NCBI RefSeq assembly: GCF_039654945.1
Contig: NW_027361869.1
Coordinates: 7,688,001 to 7,752,000, forward strand
Reading direction: 5' to 3'
DNA length: 64,000 nt
Origin: Dendrobates tinctorius
Taxonomy: Eukaryota
A program made the translations under genes and the position numbers. Shown in pieces: positions 3,888 through 33,964 of the stretch (positions are counted from its first letter, which is position 1; every line of letters begins with the position of its first letter). The notes under the pieces were generated by a model, which was given only the letters and a program-made list of their open reading frames with translations, ran no database searches and was not told where the DNA came from.

Positions 3888-4306
3888 GTTGTAGACTACT
3901 AATTTGAACCAAGCTCCACTTAGGCCTGTGGCTTCACTGATTTTCGTATTTCCCCTGTCCTCCAACCCCGCCAGTTACAGCTCCGAAGTGGCGTCTGCAC
4001 AATCCACACTTGTTCCTGTGTTACAGGTGTTCAGTCCGGTCAGTTAATCCCCTGATGTGTGTCCGGCAATGTCGCCTGCTCTGTCCACATTCCCATAATG
4101 GGAATGTGGACAGAGCAGGCGACATTGCCGGACACACATCAGGGGATTAACTGACCGGACTGAACACCTGTAACACAGGAACAAGTGTGGATTGTGCAGA
4201 CGCCACTTCGGAGCTGTAACTGGCAGGGTTGGAGGACAGGGGAAATACGAGAGACAGTGGAGCCACAGGCCTAATTGGAGCACGGTTAAAAATCAGTAGT
4301 GGTACG
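3888..4306. repeat. Long palindrome 1 (~210-bp arms, 1-nt spacer at 4097)
   Basis: ...CACATTCCCAT-A-ATGGGAATGTG...; arms perfectly complementary for about 125 bp from the centre. Confidence 0.93.
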
Positions 4307-4316
4307 ACTGTGTAGG

Positions 4317-6612
4317 CAGCAGGAGACTTTGCCATCCACACAGCAGGGGATCAGCTGACATTACTGAACCCCACTGAGACACGGGAGCAAGTATCTCTTT
4401 CCGTGTGGACGGCACTTCCGAACTACAACTGGCTGTGTTGAAGCCCAGGAAATAGGAGGGTGTAGGCAGAGGCCTACTGTATTTTGAATGAGGTGACAGC
4501 AGGAGAGACTGCCATCCACACAGCAGGGGATCAGCTGACGTTACTGAACCCCACTGAGACACGGGAGCAAGTATCTCTTTCCGTGTGGACGGCACTTCCG
4601 AACTACAACTGGCTGTGTTGAAGCCCAGGAAATAGGAGGGTGTAGGCAGAGGCCTACTGTCTTTGTAATGCGGAGACAGCAGGAGAGACTGCCATCTCCA
4701 CAGCAGGGGATCAGCTGGCAATGATGAACCCCACTAACACTTGAACGAATGTGTTTGGCTCTGTGGAGACGACACTTCTGAACACCAACTGACGCTGTTG
4801 GAGCCCAGGATTAGGCGAGGAGCAGGCTGTGGCCTACTGGATTTTGGCACGTGAAGGCAGCAGGAGACTTGCCATCTCCACAGCAGGGGAACAGCTGGCA
4901 GTGCTGAACCCCACTAACACTCTAACGAAGGTGTTTGGCTCTGTGGAGACGACACTTCTGAACACCAACTGACGCTGTTGGAGCCCAGGATTAGGCGAGA
5001 AGCAGGCTGGGGCCTACTGGATTTTGGCAGGTGAAGGCAGCAGGAGACTTGCCATCTCCACAGCAGGGGAACAGCTGGCAGTGCTGAACCCCACTAACAC
5101 TCTAACGAAGGTGTTTGGCTCTGTGGAGACGACACTTCTGAACACCAACTGACGCTGTTGGAGCCCAGGATTAGGCGAGGAGCAGGCTGGGGCCTACTGG
5201 ATTTTGGCAGGTGAAGGCAGCAGGAGACTTGCCATCTCCACAGCAGGGGAACAGCTGGCAGTGCTGAACCCCACTAACACTCTAACGAAGGTGTTTGGCT
5301 CTGTGGAGACGACACTTCTGAACACCAACTGACGCTGTTGGAGCCCAGGATTAGGCGAGGAGCAGGCTGGGGCCTACTGGATTTTGGCAGGTGAAGGCAG
5401 CAGGAGACTTGCCATCTCCACAGCAGGGGAACAGCTGGCAGTGCTGAACCCCTCTAACACTCTAACGAAGGTGTTTGGCTCTGTGGAGACGACACTTCTG
5501 AACACCAACTGACGCTGTTGGAGCCCAGGATTAGGCGAGGAGCAGGCTGGGGCCTACTGGATTTTGGCAGGTGAAGGCAGCAGGAGACTTGCCATCTCCA
5601 CAGCAGGGGAACAGCTGGCAGTGCTGAACCCCACTAACACTCTAACGAATGTGTTTGGCTCTGTGGAGACGACACTTCTGAACACCAACTGACGCTGTTG
5701 GAGCCCAGGATTAGGCGAGGAGCAGGCTGGGGCCTACTGGATTTTGGCAGGTGAAGGCAGCAGGAGACTTGCCATCTCCACAGCAGGGGAACAGCTGGCA
5801 GTGCTGAACCCCACTAACACTCTAACGAAGGTGTTTGGCTCTGTGGAGACGACACTTCTGAACACCAACTGACGCTGTTGGAGCCCAGGATTAGGCGAGG
5901 AGCAGGCTGGGGCCTACTGGATTTTGGCAGGTGAAGGCAGCAGGAGACTTGCCATCTCCACAGCAGGGGAACAGCTGGCAGTGCTGAACCCCACTAACAC
6001 TCTAACGAATGTGTTTGGCTCTGTGGAGACGACACTTCTGAACACCAACTGACGCTGTTGGAGCCCAGGATTAGGCGAGGAGCAGGCTGTGGCCTACTGG
6101 ATTTTGGCACGTGAAGGCAGCAGGAGACTTGCCATCTCCACAGCAGGGGAACAGCTGGCAGTGCTGAACCCCACTAACACTCTAACGAAGGTGTTTGGCT
6201 CTGTGGAGACGACACTTCTGAACACCAACTGACGCTGTTGGAGCCCAGGGTTAGGCGAGGAGCAGGCTGGGGCCTACTGGATTTTGGCAGGTGAAGGCAG
6301 CAGGAGACTTGCCATCTCCACAGCAGGGGAACAGCTGGCAGTGCTGAACCCCACTAACACTCTAACGAAGGTGTTTGGCTCTGTGGAGACGACACTTCTG
6401 AACACCAACTGACGCTGTTGGAGCCCAGGATTAGGCGAGGAGCAGGCTGGGGCCTACTGGATTTTGGCAGGTGAAGGCAGCAGGAGACTTGCCATCTCCA
6501 CAGCAGGGGAACAGCTGGCAGTGCTGAACCCCACTAACACTCTAACGAATGTGTTTGGCTCTGTGGAGACGACACTTCTGAACACCAACTGAAGCTGTTG
6601 GAGCCCAGGATT
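4317..6612. repeat. 180-bp tandem repeat (~13 copies) inside the hAT
   Basis: Sequence lines repeat every 180 bp; all three plus-strand frames contain stops. Confidence 0.95.
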
Positions 6613-6667
6613 ACGCATGCCGCATGCAGAGGCCAATGGGCAGTGGTTTTTATGGAGGTTGTGGACT

Positions 6668-7080
6668 ACTACTGATTCTAACCATGCTCCACTTAGGCCT
6701 CTGGCTCCACTGTCTCTACTATTTACCCTGGCCTCCAACCCCGCCAGCTACATCTCTGAAGTGGCGTCAGCACAATCTACACTTGTTCCTGTGTTACTGG
6801 TGCTCAGTCCCGTCAGTTGATCCCCTGATGTTTGTCCGGCAAGTTCGCCAGCTCTGTCCTCATTCCCACTACTGGTTATGGGAATGTGGACAGAGCAGGA
6901 GACCTTGCTGGACACACATCAGGGGATAAACTGATGGGACTGAGCCACAGGAACACAGGAACAAGTGTAGATTGTGCTGACGCCACTTCAGAGATGTAGA
7001 TGGCGGGGTTGGAGGTCAGGGGAAATAGTAGAGACAGTGGAGCCAGAGACCTAAGTTGGGCACGGTTAAAAATCAGTAGT
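6668..7080. repeat. Long palindrome 2 (~200-bp arms, 10-nt loop 6869-6878)
   Basis: CATTCCCA-ctactggtta-TGGGAATG centre; paralog of palindrome 1. Confidence 0.9.
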
Positions 7081-7294
7081 GGTTTGAATGTTGATGGAGC
7101 TGGTGACTTTGCTGTCCACACAGCAGGGGATCAGCTGGCATTACTGAACCCCACTAACACAGGAGCTAGTGTGTTTCTCTGTGCAGACGACACATCTGAG
7201 CGACAACTGGCTGTGTTGAAGCAAAGGGATTATAGTTCAGGTGGTAGAAAAATGAACACACCAGCAGACCTGGATACAGTTGCCAACCACTAAT

Positions 7295-10200
7295 TTAGTC
7301 TGTAAGAGGAATGGCAAAGTCTTTGGAGATCCAGGCCTTGTTCATTTTCAGAAAAGTCAGCCGGTCAACATTATCGGAAGATAGTCGCGTGCGACGGTCT
7401 GTTAGTACACCACCTGCGGCACTAAAGACACATTCCGATAATACACTGGCAGCAGGGCAAGCCAGCACCTCCAATGCATACTGGCTAAGCTCTGGCCATG
7501 TATCCAGCTTAGAGACCCAAAACTTGAAGGGGGAAGAGCCATCTGGGAGTACAGCGACAGGGCAAGACATGTAGTCTGACACCATCTGACGGAAGCGTTG
7601 CCTCCTGCTGACTCGAGGCGTCGCTGATGGTGTAGACAATTGTGGTGGACACACAAAACTTTGCCACATTTGGGCCATAGTGGTCTTGCCTTGTGCTGCG
7701 GCGCTGCCTCTGCTCCCTCTTTGTGCAGAGTTTCCTCCACTGCCTCGACGCACAGAGCTGCTTTGTAAAGCACTAGCAACAATGCTGTCGGGTGGAATGG
7801 AAAACATTATGGACTGCACCAGTGACTCTTCGTACTCCCGCATTTTACGCTCCCGGTTCAACGTTGGTATGAGCCTTTGTACGCTGTCCCGGTAGCGAGG
7901 ATCTTGGAGGGTGTACACCCAATAATCAGCCGAGACGAGAATGTGGGCGATGCGGCGGTCGTTTCTCAGGCACTGCAGCATGAAATCAACCATGTGCTGC
8001 AGACTCCCAACTGCCAAAGAACCGCTGTCCCCTGTTTGAGGCGTGACCTCGGCCTGCTCTGCATCACCCCACCCTCGCTGTACATACTGAGTAGAGGTTT
8101 GTGTACCTCCCTCCTCTGGAGAGATGTCTTCCTCCTCCATCGACTCCTCCTCATCCTCCTCACAAAGTGTCCCCTGCCTAGGCCTTTGTGAGGAAACACG
8201 TAGCGCAGACTGTCCAGAAGCAGATGGCATTTGGGACTCCTCATCCTCCACCTCTTCTGAAACCTCATCCCTTAGTGCTTGCAGTGTTTGTTGAAGCAGG
8301 CAGATAAGGGGGACAGTCATGCTGACTAGTGCATCATCTGCACTCGCCATCCGCGTGGATTCATCGAAGGCACGCAAAACGAGGCAGATGTCCTTCATAG
8401 AGGCCCACTCAATGGTGCTGAAGTGTGAACGGCGCACAGTGCGACTTGTTTGCGCCTGATGCAGCTGGTACTCCATGACTGCTGCCTGCTGCTCACACAA
8501 CCGCTCCAACATATGTAACGTTGAATTCCACCGGGTGGGTAGGTCACATATGATGCGATGTTCCGGAAGGCCAAATCGTCGCTGCAGAGCAGCGAGGCGC
8601 GATCTTGCCGTGCTGGAACGTCGCAAGTGAGCGCACTCTATGCGGACCTTGTGCAACAGTGCAGCAAGATCCGGATAGTCCCTCAGAAAGCTCTGCACGA
8701 CCAAGTTAAGAACATGTGCCAGACATGGGATGTGTGTGAGGTTGCCTAGGCCAAGAGCTGCCACCAGATTTCGGCCATTGTCACACACTACCAAGCCCGG
8801 CTGGAAATTCGCTGGCCCAAACCACACATCGCTCTCCAGCTTGATAGCATTCCAGAGCTCCTGCGCTGTGTGGCTTCGATTCCCCAAAGAAATTAATTTG
8901 AGTACAGCCTGTTGACGTTTGGCCACGGCTGTGCTCATATCGGTCGTAACAGGCTCCTGCTCTGCTGTTTCTGAGGAACTTGAGTAGGAGGAGGAGTCTA
9001 TGTGTACAGACTGGAGTCCTGCAATCCGTGGCGTTGGAAGAACACGTACAGCTCCACTCTCCAGATCTGTACCCGGCTCCACAACATTGACCCAGTGGGC
9101 AGTGAGGGAAAGGTATCGTCCCTGTCCATGGTTACTGGTCCACGCATCGGTGGTCAGGTGGACCTTGCTACTAACGGCGTTTAGTAGCGCATGTTTTATT
9201 TTGCCCTCAACATGTTTCTGCAGGGCAGGGACGGCTCGCCTGCTGAAATAAAAGCGGCTGGGCACGTTGTATTGGGGGACTGCCAATGCCATTAAGTCCC
9301 GGAAGGTGTCAGTGTCCACCAGCCTGAATGACAGCATTTCAACTGCCAGAAGTTTGGCAATGCCAGCATTCAGAGACTGTGCTCGGGGATGGTTTGCCGA
9401 GTAAGGGCGCCTTTTATCCCATGCCTGTGCTACCGATGGCTGTGATGGATGGGAACGTGCTGCTATGGGTGTAATCTGACAGGGTCTCCGGACAACAGTG
9501 GCAGAGGTTCTTCCTTGGCGATCCTGTGAGGAAGCCGAACCAGCAGTGTGTGAGCTGGAGGAAGAGGGCCCAACACGAACTGAAGAGGTGGTAGGTGGTG
9601 CTGTACGTTGGCCTACGTCTTCAGGGTGTCTCTGCAACTCCAACTCGTGCTTGGTGCGCACATGTTTCCACATATTTGTGGTATTGAGGTTGCTGACATT
9701 TCTCCCTCTTTTGACTCTCTGATGACACAGCTTGCATTTGACAAAGCAAATGTCATCTGCAACTGTGTCAAAAAAGGACCACGCACTGCAACTCTTGTGA
9801 GCGCCCGGTTTGCCTTTGGAAGGAGGAATGCTCCTAACGGGTGCCGAAGTGGAGGGTACAGGCAACCAAGTCTTCCCCCTCCCTCTGCCTCCTGTTTTGG
9901 CCGGTAGGGGAATCTCTTCCTCCGAGCTGCTCCCACCACCTTCCTGTTGCTCACGCCATGATGGGTCAAGGACCTCATCATCTTCCCTCCCCTCTTCAAA
10001 CAGCTGCTTCTCCGGGGTTGTCTCGCCAGCACCGTACGCACCAGAAAGTGGCAACTGAGTCTCGTCATCATCTGATGCGTACTGAGGTGTGCTGACCATA
10101 GGCACTGGCCCACTCGCCTCTTCAGATTCAGAGGGACAAAGAAGTTGCGCATCACTGCATACTCCCTCTTCTTCACATTCAGGAATGCTGCTTGGCTGGC

Positions 10201-10666
10201 CCCCTCTTTCCAAGCCAACAGATTCCGAGAACAGAAGTAGAGACTGTGATGGCTCCTGTCCATGTCTCTCTGACTGCCTGGGCACTTTGGCAGGTGGTGA
10301 AGAGACAGATGGTTGCTCTTCGGTGCTCTGACCCTGAGAGGATGCGGAATTAATTGAAGTCGATGCGTTAGCTGCCATCCATCCGACAACGGCTTCAATT
10401 TGTTCCTCCCGCAGCAGTGGGGTACGTTGAGGTCCTACAAAGCTGCGCATAAAGGACTGTTGCCTGCTAAAACTGGGGGATGCTGATCCACTGGTGCCCG
10501 CAGCAGGCCCAGAATCCCCACGTCCTCTACCTGTAGAATCCCCACGTCCTCTCCCTGCAGAATCCCCACGTCCTCTCCCTGCTGAAACTCCACGCCCACG
10601 CCCACGCGCCTTACACCCTGCCTTCTTCATCTTGCAAGACTGCTTAAGATAGGCAAAAAAGTACAA
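7295..10666 (-). CDS. hAT transposase (ZBED-like), 1123 aa; the true start may be the second Met (MKKAG)
   Basis: BED finger WSFF...CKLC...WKHVRTKH; TTDAW, CDNG, CLAH (CxxH), TRWNST, DPRY; C-terminal SECVFS in the hATC dimerisation region; N-terminal RG repeats. Confidence 0.93.
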   Translation of the reverse strand: MYFFAYLKQSCKMKKAGCKARGRGRGVSAGRGRGDSAGRGRGDSTGRGRGDSGPAAGTSGSASPSFSRQQSFMRSFVGPQRTPLLREEQIEAVVGWMAANASTSINSASSQGQSTEEQPSVSSPPAKVPRQSERHGQEPSQSLLLFSESVGLERGGQPSSIPECEEEGVCSDAQLLCPSESEEASGPVPMVSTPQYASDDDETQLPLSGAYGAGETTPEKQLFEEGREDDEVLDPSWREQQEGGGSSSEEEIPLPAKTGGRGRGKTWLPVPSTSAPVRSIPPSKGKPGAHKSCSAWSFFDTVADDICFVKCKLCHQRVKRGRNVSNLNTTNMWKHVRTKHELELQRHPEDVGQRTAPPTTSSVRVGPSSSSSHTAGSASSQDRQGRTSATVVRRPCQITPIAARSHPSQPSVAQAWDKRRPYSANHPRAQSLNAGIAKLLAVEMLSFRLVDTDTFRDLMALAVPQYNVPSRFYFSRRAVPALQKHVEGKIKHALLNAVSSKVHLTTDAWTSNHGQGRYLSLTAHWVNVVEPGTDLESGAVRVLPTPRIAGLQSVHIDSSSYSSSSETAEQEPVTTDMSTAVAKRQQAVLKLISLGNRSHTAQELWNAIKLESDVWFGPANFQPGLVVCDNGRNLVAALGLGNLTHIPCLAHVLNLVVQSFLRDYPDLAALLHKVRIECAHLRRSSTARSRLAALQRRFGLPEHRIICDLPTRWNSTLHMLERLCEQQAAVMEYQLHQAQTSRTVRRSHFSTIEWASMKDICLVLRAFDESTRMASADDALVSMTVPLICLLQQTLQALRDEVSEEVEDEESQMPSASGQSALRVSSQRPRQGTLCEEDEEESMEEEDISPEEGGTQTSTQYVQRGWGDAEQAEVTPQTGDSGSLAVGSLQHMVDFMLQCLRNDRRIAHILVSADYWVYTLQDPRYRDSVQRLIPTLNRERKMREYEESLVQSIMFSIPPDSIVASALQSSSVRRGSGGNSAQRGSRGSAAAQGKTTMAQMWQSFVCPPQLSTPSATPRVSRRQRFRQMVSDYMSCPVAVLPDGSSPFKFWVSKLDTWPELSQYALEVLACPAASVLSECVFSAAGGVLTDRRTRLSSDNVDRLTFLKMNKAWISKDFAIPLTD

Positions 10667-11004
10667 AGGGGGGCCTTAGTGTGCTTATTCCTGAACAGCT
10701 GGTTACAGGTACAAGAAACACTAATTTTATGAAGTGTGTGTGTGTGTGGACTAGACTTTAATAGGAGCTGATGTGGCCTACACAAGTTCAAAATGTAGTG
10801 TTTGGTGAACTTTTTTTGTGGTTTCTTTGTTGGAAACAAACTCAAAGTATGTGAACAAAGAATTGAAACTGATAGTATCACCAACTTTTTGGAGCTATTA
10901 CAATGCAGGCAGGTAACCTACAATGCAAAAGATGAGGCTCCAAAAAAATTGGGTAATACTAATCTGGCTGCGCCGGCAGGGCACAAGCCAGAAAAAAAGG
11001 CTCC

Positions 11005-11770
11005 TCTATCTACTCCTATATAGTGTTTGCAACCAACCAATGTTGATGGATACGGATGGATGCACACTAATAGGAGAAGAAAAAATGAGCTGCACTCAAA
11101 GACAAATATGTGTGAGGCAGTGACGCACGTTGAGCGTCCTACAACCAGACGTAGCTGCAGGACACTCTACTCAGCGTGAGCTGCACTCACACACAGTCAG
11201 AGGCCTCTCAGACAGCCGTCAACAGTGCAGCTAAGTGGGCACTGGCACTGACAGGCTGCAGAAAGGCTCCGCTGTGTACTCCTTTATAGTGTTTGCAACC
11301 ACCGTAGATGGAGACGGATGGATGCACACTAATAGAAGAAAAAATGAGCTGCACTCAAATAAAAATATGTGTGAGGCACTGACGCACGCTGAGCGTCCTA
11401 CAGCCAGACGTAGCTGCAGGACACACTACTCAGCGTGAGCTGCACTCACACACAGTCAGAGACCTCTCAGACAGCCGTGAACAGTGCAGCTAAGTGGACA
11501 CTAGCACTGAAAGGCTGCAGAAAGGCTCCGCTGTCTACTACTAGTGTTTGCAACCAACGTATATGGATACGGATGGAAGCACACTAGATTGAAATTATGT
11601 AAAAAATGCAGCTCAAAAAATAAAAGATGTATGAGGCAGCAGTGATCACACTGGGTGGCCTACAGCCTGACGTGGCTGCAGGACCCACTCCACAGCGTGA
11701 GCTGCACTCACACAGCCCTTGCAGACAGCTGTGAACACTGCTGCTAGGGCAAAGAAGGCTACAGTGGTGG
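11005..11770. repeat. ~260-bp tandem repeat (3 diverged copies) upstream of the transposase
   Basis: GTGTTTGCAACC recurs at 11023, 11289 and 11544 with shared downstream sequence. Confidence 0.85.
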
Positions 11771-11883
11771 TTTATGTAGCCTGGGTAAAGCACTAGATGT
11801 TTGGTGGAATCGCTATTTCTAACTGTCCCTCACAGTCTTCTACAGCAGCCTGTCCCTAACTGAATTCACAGCAGAGTGACCAG

Positions 11884-11945
11884 AAATGGCGGCTGCGGTG
11901 GCTTTTATAGTGCATCATGACATCATTTCGGCAGCCAATCACAGC
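11884..11945 (-). promoter_or_regulatory. Putative transposase promoter (CCAAT box, TATAAAA, YY1-like GCCGCCATTT)
   Basis: Minus strand reads ATTGG...TATAAAAGCCACCGCAGCCGCCATTT, pointing toward the ORF. Confidence 0.55.
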
Positions 11946-12174
11946 CATGCCAATAGTTAACATGCCTACATGCCTAACAGGATGTGCCCACACTTCGGAG
12001 GATTCCCATTGGCTTAATCAAAGCAAGCAGGCTCATAGCATGATGGGAACTTCCTATTCCGATTCCGATTCCGGAATCCGATATGACAAAAGTATCGGAA
12101 TTAAGTATCGGAATTCCGATACCGCTAATATCGGCCGATACCCGATACTTGCGGTATCGGAATGCTCAACACTA

Positions 12175-15100
12175 ATGATCAGTGCAACCACCTTGTCTGT
12201 GCACGGCTGTATGATAAGTGCCAACACCTCGTCCCTACAGAGCTGTATGATTAGTGCCACCAACTTTTCCCTGCAGAGCTCTATGATCAGTACCACCAAC
12301 TTGTCGCCGCAGAGGTGTATGATCAGTGTCACCACCTTGTCCCAGCAGAGCTGTAAGATCAGTGCCACTACCTCGTCCCTGCAGGGCTGTATGATCTGTG
12401 CCACTACCTCATCCCTGCAAAGCTGTATGATTAGTGCCACCACCTCGTCACTGCAGAACTGTATGATTAGTGCCACCACCTCGTCACTGCAGAACTGTAT
12501 GATCAGTGCCACCACCTATTCCCTTCAGAGCTGTGTGATCAGTGCCACCACCTCCTCCCTGCAGAGCTGTATGATCAGTACCACCACCTTGTCGCCGCAG
12601 AGGTGTATGATCAGTGTCACCACCTTATCCCCGCAGAGCTGTATGATCAGTGCCACAACCTCATGCCTGCAGAACCGCATGATCAGTGCCTCCAACTTAT
12701 CCCTAAATAGATATATAATCAGTGCAACCACATTGTCCCCGCAAAGCTGTATGATCAGTGCCAACACCTCATCCTTGCAGAATTGTATGATCAGTGTCAC
12801 CACCTCTTCCCTGCAGAGCTGTATGATCAGTGCCACCAACTCCTCCCTGCTGAGCTGTATGATCAGTGCCACCACCTCCTCCCTGCAGAGCTGTATGATC
12901 AGTGCCACCACCTCATCCCTGCAGAGCTGTATGATCAGTGCCACAACCTCATCTCTGCAGAACCGCATGATCAGTGCCTCCAACTTATCCCTAAAGAGAT
13001 ATATAATCAATGCAACCACATTGTCCCCGCAAAACTGTATGATCAGTGCCAACACATCATCCTTGCAGAGCTTTATGATCAGTGTCACCACCTCTTCCCT
13101 GCAGAGCTGTATGATCAGTGCCACCAACTCCTCCCTGCAGAGCTGTATGATCAGTGCCACCATCTTATCCACACAGAGCTGTATGATCAGTGCCACCACC
13201 TACTCCCTGCAGATCTGTGTGATCAGTGCCACTACCTCCTCCCCGCAGAACTGTATGATCAGTGCACCACCTCATCCCTGCAGAGCTGTAAGATCAGTGA
13301 CACAACCTTGTCCCTACAGAGCCTTATGATCAGTGCCACCGCCTCCTCCCCACAGAGGTGTATGATCAGTGCAACCACCTCCTCCCTGTAGAGCTGTCTG
13401 ATCAGTACCACCACCTTGTCCAAGCTGAGCTGTATGTTCAGTGCCACCACCTTTTCCCTGCAGAGCTGTATGTTCAGCGCCACCACCTCCTCCCTGCAGA
13501 GCTGTATGATCAGTACCACCACCTTGTCCCCGCACAGCTGTATGATCAGTGCCACAACCTCATCCTTGCAGAACCGCATGATCAGTGCCTCCAACTTATC
13601 GCTAAAGAGATTTATAATCAGTGCAACCACATTGTCCCCGCAAAGCTGTATGATCAGTTCCAACACCTCATCCTTGCAGAGCTGTATGATCAGTGCCACC
13701 AACTCCTCCCTGCAGAGCTGTATTATCATTGCCACCATCTTATCCACACAGAGCTGTATGATCAGTGCCACCACCTGATCCCCGCAGAACTGTATGATCA
13801 GTGCCACCACCTCATCCCTGCAGAGCTTTAAGATCAGTGACACAACCTTGTACCTGCAGAGCCTTATGATCAGTGCAACCACCTCATCCCTGCAGAGCTG
13901 TATCTTCAGTGCCATCACCTCATCCCTGCAGAGGTGTATGATCAGTGCCACTACCTCATCCCTGCAAGCAAGTATGTACAGTGCCAACACCTCCTCCCTG
14001 TAGAGCTGTCTGATCAGTGCCACCACCTTGTCCGCGCTGAGCTGTATGTTCAGTGCCACCACCGTTTCCCTGCAGAGCTGCTTGTGCAGTGCCACCACCT
14101 TTCCATGCAGAGCTGTATGATCAGTACTACCACGTTGTCGCCGCAGAACTGTATAATCAGTGCCACCACATTGTCACCGCAAAGCTGTATGATCAGTGCC
14201 ATCAGTTGGTCAGCACAGAGCTGTATGATCAGTACCACCACCTAGTCCCCGCAGAGCTGTATGATCAGTGCCACCGCCTACTCCTTGCAGAGCTGTAAGA
14301 TCAGTGCCACCACCTAATCCCTGCAGAGCTATTTGACCAGTGCCACCACCTCGTCCCTGCAGAGATGTATGATGAGTGCTACCACCTCATCCCTGCAGAC
14401 CTGTATGATCAGTGCCACCACATCATCCCTGCAGAGCTTTATGATCAGTGCCACCATCTTGTCCCCGCAGAGCTGTATGATCAGTACCACCACCTTGTTG
14501 CTGCAGAGGTGTATGATCAGTGTCACCAACTTTTCCCTGCAGAGCTGTATGATCAGTGCAACCACCTCATCCAGGCACAGCTGTATCTTCAGTGCCACCT
14601 CCTCATACCTGCAGAGCTGTATGATCAGTGCCACTACCTCATCCCTGCAAACCAGTATGTTCAGTGCCACAACCTCCTCCATGTAGAGCTGTCTGATCAG
14701 TGCTACCATCTTGTCCGCGCTGAGCTGTATGTTCAGTGCCACCACCTTTTACCTGCAGACCTGTATGATCAGTGCCACCACCTTGTCGCCGCAAAGTTGT
14801 ATGATCAGTGCCACCGCCTACTCCTTGCAGAGCTGTACGATCAGTGCCACCACCTAATCCCTGCAGAGCTATTTGATCAGTGCCACCACGTCATCCCCTC
14901 AGAGCTTTATGATCAGTGCCACCATCTCGTCCCCGCAGAGCTGTATGATCAGTGCCACCACCTCCTCCCTGCAGAGCTGTATGATTAGTACCACCACCTC
15001 ATCCTTGTAGAGCTGTATTATCACTGCCACCACCTTGTCCCCGCAAAGCTGTAACATAAGTGCCACCACATTGTCCGAGCAGAGCTGCATGATCAGTGCC

Positions 15101-15876
15101 ACCACCTCCTCTCTGCAGAGCTGTATGATAAGTGCCACCACCTGGTCCTTGCAGAGCTGTATGATCAGTACCAACACCTTGTCGCCGCAGAGGTGTATGA
15201 TCAGTGCCACCACCTCCTCTCTGCAGAGCTGTATGATAAGTGCCACCACCTGGTCCTTGCAGAGCTGTATGATCAGTACCAACACCTTGTCCCCGCAGAG
15301 CTGTATGATCAGTGCCACCACCTTGTCGCCGCAGAGGTGTATTATCAGTGTCACCACCTTGTCCCCGCAGAGCTGTATGATCAGTGCCACCTCCTCATTC
15401 CTGCAGAGCTGTATGATCAGTGCCACCACCTCCTCCCTGAAAAGCAGTATGATTAGTGCTACCAACTCGTCACTGCAGAACTTTATGATCAGTGCCACCA
15501 CACATTCCCTTCAGAGCTGTATGATCAGTGCCACCACCTCCTCTCTGCAGAGCTGTATGATCAGTACCACCAACTTGTCGCCGCAGAGCTGTATGATCAG
15601 TGCCACCACCTGGTCCTTGCAGAGCTGTGTGATCTGTGCCACTACCTCATCCCTGCAGAGCTGTATGATCAGTGCCACAACCTCATCCCTGCAGAGCTGC
15701 ATGATCAGTGCCACCATCTTATCCACACAGAGCTGTATGATCAATGCCACCACCTACTCCCTGCAGAGCTGTATGATCAGTGCCACCACCTCGTCCCTGC
15801 ACACCTGTATCATCAGTGCCACCACATCATCCCTGCAGAGCTTTATGATCAGTGCCACCACCTCATCCCTATACAG
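12175..15876 (+). repeat. 36-bp satellite array (~100 monomers)
   Basis: Continuous head-to-tail monomers. Confidence 0.96.
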
Positions 15877-17428: not shown

Positions 17429-17469
17429 GGCTCTTTTCAGAGCCACCACCCTGTCCCCGCAGAGCTGTA
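17429..17469 (+). terminator. H1 3' stem-loop (17429-17444) and HDE (AGAGCTGTA, 17461-17469)
   Basis: GGCTCTTTTCAGAGCC-ACCAC, with a purine-rich element 16 nt downstream. Confidence 0.93.
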
Positions 17470-17697
17470 TGATCGGTGCCACCACCCTGTCCTCGTAGAG
17501 CTGTATGATCAGTGCCACCACCCTGTCCCCGCAGAGCTGTTTGATCTGAGCCACCACCCTGTCCCCACAGAGCTGTATGATCAGTGCCTCCACCTCCTCC
17601 CCGCAGAGCTGTATGATCAGTGCCACCACCCTGTCCCCGCAGAGCTGTATGATCAGTGCCTCCACCTCCTCCCCGCAGAGCTGTATGATCGGTGCCT
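17437..17697 (+). repeat. Short 36-bp satellite array (~7 monomers) starting within the H1 stem-loop
   Basis: TCAGAGCCACCACCCTGTCCCCGCAGAGCTGTATGA followed by in-phase copies. Confidence 0.93.
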
Positions 17698-18100
17698 TCA
17701 GGTGACAGTTCTGTGTAATGGAGGGAAGGGGGCCGATGTGCAGCAGAAATCACGTTACTTCCATCATCCTAATTATCACCACCTGTAACCCACATCTTAG
17801 TAAGAGTGGTGTGAGGTTATAACTCCGATGTGAGAGTTGGAGCGTCAGTGACTGATTATAGAGGAGCTGCTGTACCGCTCTGGGTACTGGGAATATAGAA
17901 TCGGAGCTTCCGCTGTAGAAGCCGCCTGGAGATTGGATGTGACCCTGTGTATCAGAGCAGTGGGTGATAGCTGAACTGTGAGTCAGGTTGAGCCTTCTCT
18001 GTACAGTGATTGGTCGCGGACATCAAACGCTATTCGCTGCTCACATTCTACAAAATAACCAATGGAATGCAGGGGACGTGTCCTCATGAAGCGTGAATAG

Positions 18101-18580
<480 letters not shown>

Positions 18581-18611: not shown

Positions 18612-18627
18612 GGCTCTTTTCAGAGCC
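18612..18627 (+). terminator. H3 3' stem-loop
   Basis: GGCTCTTTTCAGAGCC followed by ACCCA and AAGAAGAGC. Confidence 0.93.
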
Positions 18628-18689
18628 ACCCAATCCTCCCTCAAGAAGAGCGAATGCCTGACCTTTAATACTGCCGGCTTTGCTACCAA

Positions 18690-19464: not shown

Positions 19465-19820
19465 AATATATGGGGAGTATACAGCACTGTATGGATACAG
19501 GATATTCAACTATAAAATACTATATGTTGGATTATCAGCACTATATGGAGATATATAATACTACTTGAAGGGTATACTGCACAATGTGTCCGTATACAAC
19601 AGTATTTGGCAGCTTACAGCACTATATGGGGGTATACAGCCACATATGATGTTATATAGAACAATATGGAGGGCCCACAGCACTTTGTGCAGAGTATTCA
19701 GCAATATGTAGGTATCAGCACTACCTTATGCTCATGTCACTATATGGAGGGTATCCAGCACTATGTGAGCCTATACATACAATAGCTATTTGGGGTTTAC
19801 AGCACTATATGGGGGTATTC
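19465..19820. repeat. Degenerate ~30-bp minisatellite (TACAGCACTATATGGGGGTA-like)
   Basis: Recurrent CAGCACTATATGG; resumes near 20060 after the CR1 piece. Confidence 0.6.
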
Positions 19821-20005: not shown

Positions 20006-20824
20006 GGAACATTCCATGATTCAGGCTTATATAGAACAGATGCTCTCGGATTTGTGTCTGCAGCACTAGATGGGGAGTATACAGCACACGTAGACTTTGT
20101 AGTGCTGTATACCACCCAGTAGGTGGTATGGAGGATGTGCAGCACCGTACGGGGTGTGTATACATTGCCTGCAGCTCCAGGGCTGATCAGTCTCAACTCC
20201 ACTTCCAGCAGTGATCGGAGCGGACCCCACACGGAGACCCGGTAACGTTATATCTGGGCGTCTCCGTGTGGGGTCCGCACTGATCACAGGAGGCCGCATC
20301 TAGCACAGATCGGATGATACAATCCGCACATGTTCTACCAGGAGGAGCCCGATGTGCTGAGCGCTGCCGGGAGAACACGTGTACATGAGGAGCAGCAGGT
20401 AGAAGGGCAATAAGGAGTTAAACGGAGGAGGAAGCACGTCTATCGATTGGTCGGTTCCTGTGGGCGGAGCTTTATAACCGTTTGATGGTTTGAATCTCCC
20501 GCTCAGTCGTGCTCTCGGCCCTCGATCATTAACCCTTCAGTGACTGGATTTCTGCTCTGTAGTGACCACATCACAGCGAGGTATGTACTGTGGTGCAGAG
20601 ATGTCTGTGCTGCACAGTGCGGATATACTGTATGCCCCCAGAACCTGGCAGCTGTATATTATAGATCAAGGAGAATAAACCACATCACCCCAAGTCCGCG
20701 GTGCCAGCTCCAATATGGAAGGAGGAAAGTGCAAGACACATGCCAGGCTGTGACAACTAGTATACTTACAGGCACCAGATTGCAGGAATAGGAAATCGTA
20801 GCCTCTCAGGTAGAAGATGTGGGT

Positions 20825-20840
20825 GGCTCTGAAAAGAGCC
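20825..20840 (-). terminator. H4 3' stem-loop
   Basis: Reverse complement reads GGCTCTTTTCAGAGCC-ACCCA. Confidence 0.93.
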
Positions 20841-20870: not shown

Positions 20871-21293
<423 letters not shown>

Positions 21294-23075
21294 TTACAGA
21301 ATCCACATGAGCTCCTCCCTTCCTCTGCTGTTTGGCTGAGCACAGAACTGTTGGAGAGTTTGAATTTCCCGCTCATTGTTCAGTTTCCCTTTTCTTTCCA
21401 GCTTGTAATATAATGTCACTTCTTCCCCTGTGATGAGAATTATTCCAGATTCAGCCTATAGATAAATGGGCAGCACAAATAGAGGGGAGCAGACACGGCC
21501 CCAGTATATGTCAGGAGGACAGAACAGACTGTAACCACAGATATTACAGGCAGCCGCCCAGGGGATCTCACACCGGTAGATACACTGCCTGATATAAGGC
21601 TCAGTCCTCAGTAATCACAGGATCTCCGGTTTTCATAGAGAATATTACATTTATATTAACCCCAGGGCTAAGCCCTCTCTGCCTTTATTCAGGTCTTATA
21701 TTCCCGCATTAGGGACATTTGTGCTATGATAGGAGTCATCATTACTTCGGGCAATTATGACACTATTGTCCTTATATTTGTGTTTTCTTCTTCCCCTGGC
21801 AATGATTCTTTTTTCCACCACATCATAGCTCACATTGCTGCAGAGTAGGGACCTGCTGTCAGCTACAATTAATTAGGAAAAACAATTATTAACATAATGA
21901 CAGAAAAGGCTGAAAATCAGAGCTCAGCAGTGATCCTGACTGATCCCAGCCGCCAATATCGCCCCATATCCTGCAGTAATTATTTAAAAAACATCTGTGA
22001 GGAGGATGTGATGGGAGATGATGTCATGACATGTCTGACCTAGAGGATCCTCACATCACAGTGTAATGTATTGTGCACTGAGCTCTCGGCAATCTTCTCT
22101 ACATGATCGCACATTTCCCATCACAGACCTCCTGCCTGGAGCTGCAGGTGGGATCTGCTTGGAAGAGCAGAATTGGTCTCCCCTGAAATGTCTCTTGTAG
22201 GATACATCTCTAGCCAATATATTGTCTCCACAATACTGATTATGACGAGAAAGGGAGATGTGATCGCCTGCAGGTCAGACACACGGGGCATCACAGCATC
22301 TGCCTAACGCGGATTCATTCTCTAACCAGGAACAGCTGCAGACTCCTGTATGGGATGTAAGCGACCAGCGACCTCTCAACACCTGCAGATTCCCCGACAT
22401 CGCTCCGTCCTGGGACCGCGCGTTATATGGAGACAAAGAACAGAAAAAGCGGGAACTGCAAACGTGTCAACCATTGGGAACATTAGCTCCTCCCCTCCCT
22501 CTGCGGATTGGCTGAACACAGGACGGTTAGGGGGTTTGAATTTCCCGCTGCTTCTAAAATGTCGTCACCGCTTCCCTTTACAGTGAAGACTCCAGCATAA
22601 TCTCTAGATAAAACTGCACCGACTACAAATGTCTCCTGTTATTTGAGGAAAAACACGAGAATCATGAACTAAGTGCAGAGAGGAAAATCGTCAGCTCACT
22701 GTCTGGTGCTGCATGGGGGAGAAAATTCAGTCTCAAAGCATCCCGGCTTAGAAAGTGTTATTAGTCATCATGGTGTATCATGAACTAAACCGAATCATGT
22801 TATACCAAATGAATGAGACCCCAGAATATCAAGATCTGTGGAGCAAGGGGTTAAAGAGTAGTCCCTGAACACAGAGCAACTTATGGAGAAGTGACCAGGT
22901 TATTATTTAGAAGGTCCTCGGTTCTCACAATCTCCTTGGTAGCATTCATCATCCCTACTTCCTTCACCTGTCACTTCCCGTCACTAGACGCAGAGACCCA
23001 GGCGGTGGAGCAGACAACTGGGGGAGACGGGAAAGGACACAGGAGCAGCCACAGCTCTGATGGAGATGGGGTGGT

Positions 23076-23091
23076 GGCTCTTAGAAGAGCC
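23076..23091 (-). terminator. H2B 3' stem-loop
   Basis: Reverse complement reads GGCTCTTCTAAGAGCC-ACCACCCCATCTCCATCAGAGCTGT. Confidence 0.92.
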
Positions 23092-23125: not shown

Positions 23126-24213
<1,088 letters not shown>

Positions 24214-24246: not shown

Positions 24247-24262
24247 GGCTCTTCTAAGAGCC
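24247..24262 (+). terminator. H2A 3' stem-loop
   Basis: GGCTCTTCTAAGAGCC-ACCCA, with HDE AAGAGCTG downstream. Confidence 0.92.
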
Positions 24263-27200
24263 ACCCACACCGTCGCCACAAGAGCTGACGCCGCTGATCT
24301 CTGCGTGCTCACATGGGACTGACGTTAGACACCACGGGCTGCCGCCACCAGTTTGTAGGTTGGTGCCCATACACACTTGATTCCGGGGTTCAACACAAAA
24401 CACTGAGGATGCCCATGTCTGGGTTATCACATGAAGCCTCAGACCTGTGTGGGGAGAGGAGTCCTCGAATAATCACAGGAAATGTCCCTCATTAGTGAAT
24501 GTCTTGATACTCGGGCCCCTGACTCCGCTGTGGAGATTACATGCGGTTATCACGTCCCGGAGTATCGGGGGATGGCGGCCGGTGATTGTCCACATCAGTG
24601 ACTGCTGCTCCTCCCGGAGGGCGATCCCGTGATGGTGGCTCTGGAGGGCCGGACTCTGCGCGGTTCTCTGTGTGACCGGATTGTGATGTCCGCTAATAAT
24701 CCTCGGCGGAAGAAGAGCGGGAAGTTCAAATCCCCAAACGGATCCTGCGATCAGACAATGAGCGGGAATCCTCGGTTAAGCGCCGCCCTCAGCCTTCAGC
24801 GATGTACATAGACGCCTTTCCTCCTCTGTTTAACCTCTTACTTGCCTTGTTCCTGCTGATCCCCTCTTATTTACCAGTGTTCATAGATGCGCCACCTTCA
24901 TCTCACATCGGGCTCCTCGAGAACATCTGCTGCTTATAGCCCCCTGTAATCAGTGCAGAAACAGCTGGGAGTCCCGATAATACTGTAAGTGACTGAGGAG
25001 ATTGCGGCACGTGCAGATCGAGCTAATTGCCATCATTGGTGAAAAGTCCTAGAGCTACACAGAGGGTTAACCCCACATTAGTGTAGTGTAATTATCCGCA
25101 GGTTCACTGAACAAATATTATGTAACAGAAGAAAATTAATTAAGCCAATAAACCACAAATCCTCCTGCTTTTCTGTAATTACTAAAAAAAAAAAAGCACA
25201 GATGAAAACCTATGTACTGATGGGGGAGCGTGATAGGCGACGCGCTGGTTCCAGCATCAATGTGCTCTCCATCCGCATGCCATACTCCATACCCCGTCCC
25301 CCATTTTTGGCCTGTATGATCAGTGCCACCACTTCACCCCTGCAGAGTTCTATAATGAGTGCCACCACCTCGTCCCTGCTGACCTGTATGTTCAGTGCCA
25401 CCACCTTTTCCCTGCAGAGCTGTATGTTCAGTGCCACCACCTTTACATGCAGAGCTGTATGATCAGTGCCACCACCTTTTCGCCGCAGAACTGTATAATC
25501 AGTGCCACCACATTGTCAACGCAAGCTGTATGATCAGTGCCACCACCTACTCCTTGCAGAGCTGTATGATCAGTGCCACCACCTAATCCCTGCAGAGCTT
25601 TTTGATCAGTGCCACCACGTCATCCCCTCAGGGCTACCTGATTAGTGCCACCACCTTGTACACGCAAAGCTGTCTGATCAGTGCCACCACCTTGTCCACG
25701 AAAAGTTGCATGATCAGTGCCACCACCTCGTCTCTGCAGACCTGTATGATCAGTGCCACTACATCATCCCTGCAGAGCTTTATGATCAGTACCACCATCT
25801 TGTCCCAGCAGAGCTGTACGATCAGTGCCACCACCTATTCCCTGCAGAGCTGTATGATCAGTGCCACCACCTCCTCCCTGCAGAGCTGTATGATCAGTGC
25901 CACAACCTCATCCCTGCAAACCAGTATGTTTAGTGCCACAACCTCCTCCCTGTAGAGCTGTCTGATCAGTGCCACCACCTTGTCCGCGCTGAGCTGTATG
26001 TTCAATAACACCACCTTTTCCCTGCAGACCTGTGTGATCAGTGCCACCACCTTGTCGCCGCAGAACTGTATAATCAGTGCCACCACCTTGTCGCCGCAGA
26101 GGTGTATGATCAGCGTCACCAACTTTTCCCTGAAGAGCTGTATGATCAGTGCCACCACCTCATCCCTGCAGGGCTGTATGATCTGTGCTACTGAAACATC
26201 CCTGCAGAGCTGTATGATCGGTGCCACTACCTCATCCCTGCAGAACTGCATGATCAGTGCCACGACCTCATCACTGCAGAGCTGTATGATCAGTGCCAAC
26301 ATCTTGTCCCCACAAAGCTGTATCATAAGTGCCACCACTTTGTCCGAGCAGAGCTGTATGATCAGTGCCATCAAATTATCCCGGGAGAGCTCTATTATCA
26401 GTGCCACCACCTACTCCCTGCAGAGCTGTATGATCAGTGCCACCATCTCCTCCCTGCAAATCTGTATAATCAGTGCCACCACCTCCTCTCTGCAGAGCTG
26501 TATGATCTGTGCCACCACCACATCCCTGCAAACCAGTATGTTCAGTGCGACAACCTCCTCCCTGCAGAGCTGTATAATCAGTGCCACCACCTTGTCTCTG
26601 CAGAGCTGTATGATTAGTGCCACCACCTGGTCCTTGCAGAGCTGTATGATCAGTAACACCACCTTGTCGCCGCAGAGGTGTATGATCAGTGCCACCACCT
26701 CATCCCTGCAGGCTGTATGATCTGTGCTACTGAATCATACCTGCAGAGCTGTATGATCGGTGTCACTACCTCATCCCTGCAGAACTGCATGATCAGTGCC
26801 ACCACCTTGTCCCCACAAAGCTGTATCATAAGTGCCACCACTTTGTGCGAGCAGAGCTGTATGATCAGTGTCACCAACTTTTCCCTGCAGAGCTGTATGA
26901 TCAGTGCCATCACCTCATCCCTACAGGGCTGTATGATCTGTTCTACTGAATCATCCCTGCAGAGCTGTATGATCGGTGCCACTACATCATCCCTGCAGAA
27001 CTGCATAATCAGTGCCACGACCTCGTCACTGCAGAGCTGTATGATTAGTACCACCACCTTGTGGCCGCAGAGGTGTATGATCAGTGCCACCACCTCCTCC
27101 CTGCAGAGCTGTATGATCAGTACCACCACCTTGTCCCCTCAGAGCTGTATGATCAGTGCCACAACCTCATCCCTGCAGAACCGCATGATCAGTGCCTCCA

Positions 27201-30054
27201 ACTTATCCCGAAAGAGATATATAATCAGTGCAACCACATTGTCCCCGCAAAGCTGTATGATCAGTGCCAACACCTCATCCTTGCAGAGCTGTTTGATCAG
27301 TGCCACCAACTCCTCCCTGCAGAGCTGCAAGATCATTGCCACCATCTTATCCACACAGAGCTGTATGATCAGTGCCACCACCTCCTCCCTGCAGAGCTGT
27401 ATGATCAATGCCACCACCTCCTCCCCGCAGAACTGTATGATCAGTGCCACCACCTCATCCCTGCAGAGCTTTAAGATCAGTGACTCAACCTTGTCCCTGC
27501 AGAGACTTATGATCAGTGCAACCACCTCATCCTTGCAGAACTGTATCTTCAGTGCCACCACCTCACCCCTGCAGAGCTGTATAATCAGTGCCACTACCTC
27601 ATCCCGGCAAACAAGTATTTTCAGTGCCACCACCTCCTTCCTGTAGAGCTGTCTGATCAGTGCCACCACCTTGTCTGCGCTGAGCTGTATAATCAGTGCC
27701 ACCACCTCTTCCCTGCAGAGCAGTATGATTAGTACCTCCACCTCATCCTTGCAAAGCTATAAGATCAGAGCCACCACCTTGTCCATGCTGAGCTATATGT
27801 TCAGTGCCACCACCTTGTCCCCGCAAAGCTGTATCATAAGTGCCACCACTTTGTCCGAGCAGAGATGTATGATCAGTGCTATCAAATTGTCCACACAGAG
27901 CTGTATGATCAGTGCCACCACCTCCTCTCTGCAGAGCTGTATGATCAGTGCCACAACCTCATCCTTGCAGAACCACATGATCAGTGCCTCCAACTTATCC
28001 CTAAAGAGATGTATAATCAGTACAACCACATTGTCCCCGTAAAGATGTATGATCAGTGCCACCACCTTGTCTGCGCAAGGCTGTGATCAGTGCAACCACA
28101 TTGTCCCCGCAAAGCTGTATGATCAGTGCCAACACCTCATCCTTGCAGATCTGTATGATAAGTGTCACCTCCTCTTCCCTGCAGAGCTGTATGATCAGTG
28201 CCACCAACTCCTCCCTGCAGAGCTGTATGATCAGTGCCACCATCTTAGCCACACAGAGCTGTATTATCAGTGCCACAACCTACTCCCTGCAGAGCTGTGT
28301 GATCAGTGCCACCACCTCCTCCCTGCAGAACTGTATGATCAGTGCCACCACTTCATCCATGCAGAGCTGTAAGATCAGTGACACAACCTTGTCCCTGCAG
28401 AGCCTTATGATCAGTGCCACCGCCTCCTCCCCAAAGAGCTGTATGATCAGTGCAACCACCTCATCCCTGCAGAGCTGTATCGTCAGTGCCACCACCTCAT
28501 CCCTGCAGAGCTGTATGATCAGTGCCACTACCTCATCCCTGTAAACAAGTATGTTCAGTGCCACCACCTCCTCCCTGTAGAGCTGTATGATCATTGCCAC
28601 CATCTTATCCACACAGAGCTGTATGATCAGTGCCACCACCTCCTCCCTGCAGAGCTGTATGATCATTGCCACCATCTTATCCACACAGAGCTGTATGATC
28701 AGTGCCACCACCTCCTCCCTGCAGAACTGTATGAACAGTGCCACCACCTCATCCCTGCAGAGCTTTAAGATTATTGACACAACCTTGTCTCTGCAGATCC
28801 TTATGATCAGTGCAACCAACTCATCCCTGCAGACCTGTATCTTCAGTGCCGCCACCTCATCCCTGCAGAGCTGTATAATCAGTGCCACTACCTCATCCCG
28901 GCAAACAAGTATGTTCAGTGCCACCACCTCCTCCCTGTAGAGCTGTCTGATCAGTGCCACCACCTTGTCCGCGCTGAGCTGTATGATCAGTGCCACCACC
29001 TCCTCCCTGCAGAGCTGTATGATCATTGCCACCATCTTATCCACACAGAACTGTATGATCAGTGCCACCACCTCCTCCCTGCAGAACTGTATGAACAGTG
29101 CCACCACCTCATCCCTGCAGAGATTTAAGATTATTGACACAACCTTGTCTCTGCAGATCCTTATGATCAGTGCAACCAACTCATCCCTGCAGACCTGTAT
29201 CTTCAGTGCCGCCACCTCATCCCTGCAGAGCTGTATAATCAGTGCCACTACCTCATCCCGGCAAACAAGTATGTTCAGTGCCACCACCTCCTCCCTGTAG
29301 AGCTGTCTGATCAGTGCCACCACCTTGTCCGCGCTGAGCTGTATGATCAGTGCCACCACCTCCTCCCTGCAGAGCTGTATGATCATTGCCACCATCTTAT
29401 CCACACAGAGCTGTATGATCAGTGCCACCACCTCCTCCCTGCAGAACTGTATGAACAGTGCCACCACCTCATCCCTGCAGAGCTTTAAGATTATTGACAC
29501 AACCTTGTCTCTGCAGATCCTTATGATCAGTGCAACCAACTCATCCCTGCAGACCTGTATCTTCAGTGCCGCCACCTCATCCCTGCAGAGCTGTATAATC
29601 AGTGCCACTACCTCATCCCGGCAAACAAGTATGTTCAGTGCCACCACCTCCTCCCTGTAGAGCTGTCTCATCAGTGCCACCACCTTGTCCGCGCTGAGCT
29701 GTATGTTCAGTGCCACCACCTTTCCATGCAGAGCTGTATGATCAGTGTCAACACCTTGTCGCCGCAGAACTGTATAATCAGTGCCACCATATTGCCACCG
29801 CAAAGCTGTATGATCAGTGCCACCACCTAGTCCCCGCTGAGCTGTATGTTCAGTGCCACCACCTTTTCCCTGCAGAGCTGTTTGTTCAGTGCCACCACCT
29901 TTCCATGCAGAGCTGTATGATCAGTGTCACCACCTTGTCGCCTCAGAACTGTATAATCAGTGCCACCACATTGCCACCGCAAAGCTGTATGATCAGTGCC
30001 ACCACCTAGTCCCCGCAGAGCTGTATGATCAGTGCCACCGCCTACTCCTTGCAG

Positions 30055-30381
30055 GCGTATCTATCCACCTGACGAAGGAGATTTATTTCCGAAACGCCCG
30101 TCGGGGCATGTTCTTATACAACTCACATAGCGTCAATCGGCTTACAGGTATTTTACACTTTGTGTTTTGTTGCACACGCCTTAGTGCGATTTGAATTTTT
30201 TGCACAGCTGCACCTCTGCACTTTGGGCACATTCATTATACATATATTTATTTTCTTTTTATGTAATTATCCTTGTGTCACTATATATATGCATTTTTGT
30301 ACCTGGTTCATTAATTAAGCCTTTTTGATATGGATTGGTTTTTCCATTATCCATAAACACATGGCTAATGTGATTGGATAC

Positions 30382-30439
<58 letters not shown>

Positions 30440-30620
30440 TTTTTTTTTTTTTTTTTTTATGCACTTAATTGTTGTGTCAATATTTTAATAAAGGCATCTT
30501 TATTTAAAAAAATAAAAATTGTGCCATTTATTATTATCATTGTTATTATTTTTATCATTCATGTAGCATCTTTTTTATCCTGTGGGATTTCTCATTCCCA
30601 TCCATCTTTGAGTTATTTTT
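30055..30620 (+). mobile_element. 566-bp insertion, probable Penelope-like pLTR or retrozyme fragment
   Basis: Flanked by 9-bp direct repeat TCCTTGCAG (30046-30054, 30621-30629); hammerhead-like core; (TA)n and poly-T at 30386-30458; AATAAA motifs. Confidence 0.6.
30062..30110 (+). ncRNA. Minimal hammerhead ribozyme-like motif
   Basis: CTGACGA-A-GGAGA(ttta)TTTCC-GAAAC-gccc-GTC; stem I is imperfect. Confidence 0.55.
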
Positions 30621-33600: not shown

Positions 33601-33821
33601 CACCTTGTCACCGCAGAACTGTATAATCAGTGCCATCACCTTGTCACCGCAAAGTTGCATGATCAGTGCCACCAGTTGGTCAGCACAGAGCTGTATGATC
33701 AGTGCCACCAACTCCTCCCTGCAGAGCTGTATGATCAGTGCCACCAACTCCTCCCTGCAGAACTGCATGATCAGTGCCACCACCTCGTCACTACAGAGCT
33801 GTATGATCAGTCCACCATCTT

Positions 33822-33964
33822 GGCTGTTTGAGGACACAAATCTGTGCGCGATCCACGCTAAGAGGGTCACCATCATGCCCAAAGATATCCAGCTAGCCCG
33901 CTGGATCCGTGGGGAGAGAGCTTAGATCTGTCCTGCTCACCTGACTGCAACACAAAGGCTCTTT
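33822..33964 (+). pseudogene. H3: H3 3' relic, copy 2
   Basis: Same as 66-208. Confidence 0.92.

Follow-up and report, generated by a model that had tools for sequence, protein, structure and literature searches.

A 36-bp satellite in a frog histone cluster is probably a tandem amplification of the H1 3' flank

Roughly one third of the DNA in the histone cluster analysed here is a 36-bp tandem repeat whose first monomer begins inside the 3' stem-loop of H1, which raises the question of where this repeat came from and whether its many copies serve any purpose. The original prediction, made from the same DNA, inferred that the satellite arose by duplication of the histone processing cassette, keeping the histone downstream element and losing the SLBP-binding hairpin, and this inference is supported by the H1 flanks of outgroup frogs and by the lack of stem-loops in the arrays. 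In our view the satellite probably arose by tandem amplification of the flank 3' of a replication-dependent H1 gene, the copies other than H1's own being most likely a by-product without a required function.

The sequence analysed is a 64,000-nt window of assembly GCA_039654945.1 (the window), in which a 33,756-bp tandem unit is present in 1.9 copies, with one histone quintet (H1, H3, H4, H2B and H2A) per unit (Table 1). The nearest homologues of the window H1 are dendrobatid H1s. Comparison of the unit copies (1-27090 with 33757-60846) found them to be base-for-base identical and, beyond this stretch, to differ only inside the satellite; the 27 kb of identity reflect either very recent duplication or homogenisation, or else assembly collapse. 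Histone stem-loops above the Rfam gathering score lie 3' of H1, H3 and H4, and those of H2A and H2B, which have the variant loop CTAA, were located by pattern. A degenerate 20-bp tandem repeat (13.9 copies, 54% matches) occupies 19536-19818, between H3 and H4.

Table 1. Histone genes, 3'-processing signals and 36-bp satellite arrays in the 64,000-nt window.
Feature	Position	Strand	Basis or remark
Bulk 36-bp satellite, about 103 monomers	12175-15870	+	TRF, Hamming scan; stops short of the H1 start codon by about 900 bp
H1 CDS, 205 aa	16784-17401	+	ORF; frog linker-histone homologues, best 93% identity over the globular half
H1 3' stem-loop (SLBP site), canonical, 16 nt	17429-17444	+	Rfam Histone3 RF00032, 35.9 bits vs gathering score 34
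Remainder of monomer 1	17445-17472	+	H1's own processing signal, read directly
H1-adjacent mini-array, 7 monomers of 36 bp and a terminal partial octamer (17689-17696)	17437-17696	+	TRF
H3	18170-18580	+	
H3 stem-loop, ACCCA, purine-rich downstream element	18612-18654	+	comparison gene
H4 stem-loop, ACCCA, weak downstream element	20798-20840	-	comparison gene
H4	20871-21182	-	
H2B stem-loop (23091-23076), ACCAC, 12-nt spacer, AGAGCTGTG	23050-23091	-	comparison gene
H2B	about 23126-23500	-	contains N gap
H2A	23821-24213	+	
H2A stem-loop, ACCCA, AAGAGCTGA	24247-24288	+	comparison gene
Bulk 36-bp satellite, about 237 monomers	25312-33817	+	TRF, Hamming scan; begins 1.1 kb 3' of H2A
Two short satellite blocks	266-411, 658-963	+	TRF; reverse-transcriptase fragment between them; hAT insertion separates them from the array at 12175
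Second unit copy, satellite blocks 34022-34167, 34414-34719, 45931-49626, 51193-51452, 59068-62680	34022-62680	+	TRF

The layout that had been claimed for the sequence after H1, and its repetition in phase, are confirmed by direct reading and by TRF. The 3' arm of the H1 stem (17437-17444) forms the first 8 nt of monomer 1, which continues with ACCAC (17445-17449, the expected cleavage region), an 11-nt C-rich spacer (17450-17460), AGAGCTGTA (17461-17469) and TGA (17470-17472); this is the arrangement of a histone 3' signal, with a stem-loop, a cleavage motif directly 3' of it and a U7-complementary purine-rich element. That the first monomer is H1's own right stem arm, cleavage site and downstream element, as proposed, is borne out both by this reading and by the orthologous block in other frogs described below, and the same layout, likewise proposed for the 3' end of H2B, is present there on the minus strand (Table 1). 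TRF reports the mini-array (17437-17696) with a period of 36 bp, 7.2 copies and 87% matches, the unit consisting of a stem-arm-like octamer, ACCAC, an 11-nt spacer, the 9-mer and TGA; the exact 9-mer is found in six of the seven monomers, and the third monomer carries one change. Judged from its sequence, only monomer 1, preceded as it is by the entire hairpin, is a complete processing signal, and it is the predicted H1 downstream element. Compared with the canonical histone 3' signal (stem-loop for SLBP, ACCCA and U7-binding downstream element), which monomer 1 possesses in full, every monomer keeps the cleavage motif, the spacing and the U7-complementary core, but the internal monomers are unable to bind SLBP because the 5' stem arm is absent, and they stand in tandem by the hundred and not once per gene. 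An Rfam search found no stem-loop at gathering score inside the arrays, and a trimer of the consensus folds no better than shuffles do (MFE -21.2 vs -25.5 +/- 3.9).

The 9-mer had also been described as a perfect complement of vertebrate U7 snRNA. The 5' ends of human and mouse U7, as printed in PMC7026596, contain the U7 motif on which that description was based, and AGAGCTGTA lies inside the reverse complement of this motif as a perfect 9-nt complement, so that the description holds against U7 of both species (PMC7026596). Rfam returned no match to a U7 gene in the window; the U7 reading presumes that the U7 5' end of the window species contains ACAGCUCU and would be able to pair with AGAGCUGUA, the complementarity given here being to mammalian U7. 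Agreement among frog histone downstream elements lends indirect support to a usual U7 5' end in this species: GAGCTG or GAGCTA follows ACCCA or ACCAC by 10-14 nt in all five window genes, where the distance is 10-13 nt, and in 10 of 11 other frog histone genes (from Rhinoderma, Leptodactylus and Mixophyes), the eleventh, one Mixophyes gene, having GGGCTG at that place. The predicted duplexes with the U7 core reach -14.0 kcal/mol for H1, -17.6 for H2B, -12.3 for H2A, -10.4 for H3 and -6.2 for H4. A predicted duplex of -10 kcal/mol or lower is formed by 51% of bulk monomers versus 2% of shuffles, 37% of the 325 bulk monomers analysed have an unaltered 9-mer, and internal monomers carry an element complementary to mammalian U7 at the right distance from ACCAC.

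Besides the mini-array, each 33.76-kb unit holds about 360 monomers, at 12175-15870 and 25312-33817, all on the plus strand. These head-to-tail arrays of 3.7 kb and 8.5 kb per unit, uniform in their 36-bp period and in orientation, are satellite DNA: scanning the window with the consensus by Hamming distance found about 550 monomers, all of them on the plus strand and none on the minus strand, with neighbours spaced by exactly 36 bp in 523 of 537 cases. The array at 25312-33817 runs in the same sense as H2A, H1 and H3. In X1, a DNA run that bears the same organism label and covers the unit, the depth of satellite contigs is about 1,200 times that of the flank in the most bulk-like bin, a figure that sums the depth of multiply placed contigs and is not a copy number. 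Under the organism labels X14 and X19, the satellite and its neighbouring spacer are present at about 85-95% identity, indicating that the array is common to related taxa.

The order of events, gene flank first or satellite first, can be read from other frog families, whose H1 loci we reached through H1 homologues (Rhinoderma darwinii, L002; Leptodactylus fuscus, L003; and Mixophyes, L005). Downstream of the stem-loop, Rhinoderma and Leptodactylus each have a single copy of ACCAC, a C-rich spacer (11-12 nt), the same 9-mer and TGATC, with unrelated sequence beyond; TRF found no 36-bp repeat at L002 or L003, and none of the H1 loci read from these two frogs and from Mixophyes has such an array. 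The orthologous block is unbroken from the end of the H1 coding sequence to window position 17474-17475, through TGATC, and homology resumes only at the H3 promoter; this block, of which monomer 1 is a part, aligns at 74-83% with the three outgroup loci, where it is single-copy. In an ungapped alignment, the Leptodactylus flank and the satellite consensus agree at 33 of 36 positions; when about 35 kb from five other vertebrate loci (four of frogs and one of a probable fish) were scanned with up to 10 mismatches allowed, this flank was the only match, and on this comparison the match is not a chance one. Mixophyes, which lies outside Hyloidea, has AGAGCTATA at the same place, but with ACCCA and no TGATC, and the H1-specific flank thus looks like a hyloid-frog trait. 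The H1 flank occurs as a single copy in two further frog families and hence predates the satellite, whose monomer is homologous to this flank and derives from it. A search of other species for a single copy of the H1 3' sequence, which had been suggested along with the original prediction, therefore succeeds in Rhinoderma and Leptodactylus, both of other families, and the polarity that it provides is what is new here, resting on alignment of orthologous H1 3' flanks.

This polarity bears on a different history, in which the satellite was born elsewhere and was put behind H1 by insertion or gene conversion, H1 having borrowed its downstream element from it. Since the octamer and ACCAC are common to every histone 3' end, ectopic recombination could graft an array in phase, and two of the seven mini-array monomers, at 2 differences from bulk monomers, do indeed lie nearer to these than to the monomer of H1 itself. 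Against such a graft, two other frog families have the 36-nt layout, TGATC included, just once at the orthologous place, where it forms one continuous stretch with the H1 coding sequence, and the satellite consensus is nearer to the outgroup flanks than chance allows. Invasion, which the original prediction had itself named as the outcome that would overturn it, is in our estimate very improbable; it is largely refuted by the outgroups, in which the H1 flank predates the satellite, and these alignments lead us to reject it and support an origin from H1.

Two further loci are of less help in this comparison: at L004 (Eleutherodactylus coqui) neither a stem-loop nor the 9-mer was found, and L001, from a distant vertebrate that is probably a fish, has an ordinary single signal. 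Other tandem repeats lie just upstream of H1 in other frogs, with 29-bp C-rich units in Leptodactylus (L003:136-840) and 30-bp and 48-bp units in Rhinoderma (L002:1-1915), and they do not match the 36-bp satellite; the 29-bp Leptodactylus repeat was considered as a homologue of the satellite, gave no match at up to 10 mismatches and was treated as unrelated.

Amplification from the H1 flank could have begun with an ancestral single-copy flank made up of a stem-loop, ACCAC, a C-rich spacer of about 11 nt, the 9-mer and TGATC, the state still found in other hyloid frogs. An octamer like the 3' arm of the stem would have lain 36 nt downstream of that arm and offered microhomology; the mini-array ends in a partial octamer followed by unique DNA, and in Rhinoderma a string like it comes directly after TGA. 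The 36 bp separating the two octamers would have been duplicated by slippage or unequal exchange between them, and unequal crossing-over within the tandem histone repeat would have expanded the unit to hundreds of copies per cluster unit. Position 5 of the monomer is T in internal monomers (98% in the bulk arrays) and in the terminal partial octamer, and A in the stem arm, and this T suggests that the internal octamer may descend from the downstream look-alike and not from the stem arm itself.

A second diagnostic position separates the bulk arrays from the mini-array. At monomer position 15, T is found in 98% of bulk monomers and in the outgroups, whereas C is found in the H1 flank and in five of the seven mini-array monomers, compared with 0.3% of bulk monomers. 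Retention of T implies that the bulk arrays were seeded before the T-to-C substitution of the H1 flank, and not by the H1 flank of today; by this marker, the bulk arrays and the mini-array are different sublineages. The mini-array could represent a second, later local amplification, or a mixed array grafted in part by recombination with bulk monomers. No dead H1 or H1 remnant lies beside the bulk arrays in the window, where one array abuts an H3 3' fragment only.

If transcribed in sense, roughly half of the copies would, by prediction, still be able to pair with the U7 5' end, and the orientation of the arrays would make sense transcription likely, by read-through from H2A and H1. On this basis the arrays might be functional, with sense read-through presenting hundreds of U7 sites, either as fail-safe processing or termination that protects the next gene or as a means of concentrating U7 snRNP, in the manner of a histone locus body scaffold or a sponge. 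Several features suit such a function: all of the approximately 550 monomers are oriented like H1, H3 and H2A with none reversed, about half keep a predicted U7-core duplex as strong as that of genuine downstream elements, and the distance from ACCAC to the 9-mer is preserved along with the 36-bp spacing (523/537). Substrates with a strong U7 duplex are stated to be processed without SLBP, cleavage being measured from the downstream element (PMC7026596), and in amphibian oocytes the histone locus bodies include U7 snRNP and attach at histone loci (PMC12046345). However, an exact period and a uniform orientation are normal for any satellite grown by unequal exchange, and no such array exists at the Rhinoderma, Leptodactylus and Mixophyes H1 loci that were read.

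Conservation within the arrays speaks more directly to this point. Over the 325 bulk monomers taken from one unit, identity to the consensus averaged 0.936 for the octamer, 0.889 for ACCAC, 0.888 for the 9-mer, 0.887 for TGA and 0.787 for the spacer. In the comparison that had been proposed, the 9-mer is more conserved than the spacer (0.888 vs 0.787, permutation p = 0.03), but this demonstrates no constraint, because a CpG that has decayed (positions 16-17) and a polymorphism at position 22 account for the low identity of the spacer, and the 9-mer is average for the monomer; we therefore rejected the difference as a sign of constraint. Non-element positions outside CpG have a mean identity of 0.894, among the 36 windows the 9-mer comes 17th by mean identity and 18th by the share of intact copies (37%), and within each base class the element positions are at or below the others. 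G-to-A changes, which break pairing, occur at 4-14%, and A-to-G changes, which preserve it, at 0-3%. Purifying selection on the U7-pairing positions is not apparent in these monomers (0.888 vs 0.894, with G-to-A changes dominant), and the substitution pattern of the arrays looks like neutral decay with a GC-to-AT bias. A 9-mer that is not conserved in excess and whose dominant changes break pairing counts against function, although neutral-looking decay of single monomers is compatible with a function that needs only many sites.

The sequencing runs were read as assembled contigs, which carry neither strand nor molecule ends and from which the H1 3' end cannot be mapped. In X6, a run of unstated kind with an RNA-like profile, nothing is found upstream of 16764, where a contig begins with adapter sequence, and this position is likely to be the H1 transcription start. 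X6 depth over the H1 body is 40-216, and two contigs extend to 17471 and 17474, that is, 22-25 nt beyond the expected cleavage site. The H1-H3 spacer (17670-18036) has a depth of 6.08, about a tenth of that of H1, and its ratio of X6 to X1 depth is about 0.09, compared with only about 0.01 for the satellite, which makes it unlikely that the spacer signal is DNA carry-over. These depths suggest uncleaved H1 transcripts that read through all seven monomers of the mini-array, as would be expected if the X6 library enriches for misprocessed histone transcripts. The presence of satellite contigs and of spacer beyond the mini-array in X6 would favour a functional array; on the other hand, spacer that lies past seven candidate sites is still at about a tenth of H1 depth, so that read-through is not stopped efficiently. 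We found no sign that the arrays are used, and regard a functional array, in any of the forms given above, as unlikely.

A cis-acting version of this reading, in which hundreds of same-sense U7 snRNP sites per unit, derived from the 3' signal of H1, would form a cleavage or termination zone or a scaffold that nucleates the histone locus body, is likewise quite unlikely in our judgement. The position of the arrays between histone genes and their strict same-sense orientation would also suit it, and a function set by the number of sites and not by single sites would explain the neutral-looking decay of the monomers. Thousands of potential U7 snRNA target sites adjoin genes that are served by U7, and amphibian oocytes build large U7-rich bodies at histone loci, which makes this cluster a natural system for the old question of whether cis RNA helps to seed histone locus bodies or to end histone transcription.

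Even if the arrays are inert, as our preferred reading of a by-product holds, the locus is a well-documented example of satellite birth, with an unusually clean history: the donor is still in place as the putative downstream element of H1, the outgroups are unduplicated, and the likely microhomology of the first duplication is visible. Genes have been known to give rise to satellites, 5S rDNA and tRNAs among them. Among hyloid frogs, the PcP190 satellite derives from 5S rDNA (PMC11675491, PMC4201667) and resembles the present repeat in being a frog satellite whose monomer recognisably comes from part of a tandem, highly expressed gene family. PcP190 stems from the transcribed body of an RNA gene (about 120 bp) and occurs on many chromosomes and in many families (PMC11675491, PMC4201667), whereas the satellite described here stems from a 36-bp non-coding RNA-processing signal and, in the window, sits between histone genes inside the cluster repeat. 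A literature search (monomer sequence, downstream element, U7, frog satellites and histone) retrieved no description of such a satellite and no report of a satellite built from an RNA-processing signal. Work from the Gall laboratory reportedly found that in newts long tracts of satellite lie between the histone clusters and are transcribed by read-through on lampbrush chromosomes, with a satellite monomer said to be unrelated to the histone processing signal. The two systems share histone clusters embedded in long satellite arrays that are transcribable from histone promoters, and bodies containing U7 at the loci, and they would differ in that the window satellite monomer is itself a histone processing signal. 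Read-through is mentioned in PMC12046345, and PMC2114352 cites the sphere-locus paper.

Mobile and rearranged sequence accompanies the arrays, and one may ask whether the repeat is an internal tandem array of a mobile element that captured the H1 3' end and spread it. The same left junction of about 60 bp precedes the arrays at 25250 and 33960, and transposon pieces are interleaved with the arrays, as such an element would have it; however, segmental duplication within the unit explains the repeated junction, and no terminal repeats, inverted ends or target duplications flank the arrays at their boundaries in the window. The one large element present, an 11.2-kb hAT DNA transposon (963-12174 and 34719-45930), does not carry the array and was inserted into it; the element has inverted ends of its own, in which GATAC-type subterminal repeats abound, and a target duplication of 8 bp without mismatch (955-962 and 12175-12182). 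We give capture by a mobile element hardly any credence, and retain tandem amplification of the H1 flank. The hAT insertion with its target duplication implies that the array predates the hAT, and since its removal restores an intact monomer, the arrays 658-963 and 12175-15870 were once continuous. As reconstructed from these boundaries, the satellite, oriented like H2A and H1, would once have filled the stretch that begins 1.1 kb downstream of H2A and reaches nearly as far as the following unit's H1 promoter.

A fragment of the H3 3' end (33822-33968 and 66-212) comprises the final 33 codons, the 3' UTR and a stem-loop that breaks off in the loop; on its 5' side it is fused directly to the 8.5-kb satellite where the latter ends, and behind it comes a junction of about 60 bp, which also precedes the array at 25250-25312. 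Fragment and junction mark a past rearrangement within the unit. Between two satellite blocks, at 414-614 and 34170-34370, lies a reverse-transcriptase fragment (RVT_1, E = 3.6e-9). The hAT has an uninterrupted open reading frame of 1123 aa on the minus strand (7295-10666), with BED zinc-finger and hAT dimerisation domains, and to judge by this frame it is possibly still active; it also contains tandem arrays of its own, at 2045-3342 (period 265 bp, 4.9 copies, 98% identity) and 4310-6613 (180 bp, 12.8 copies, 95%).
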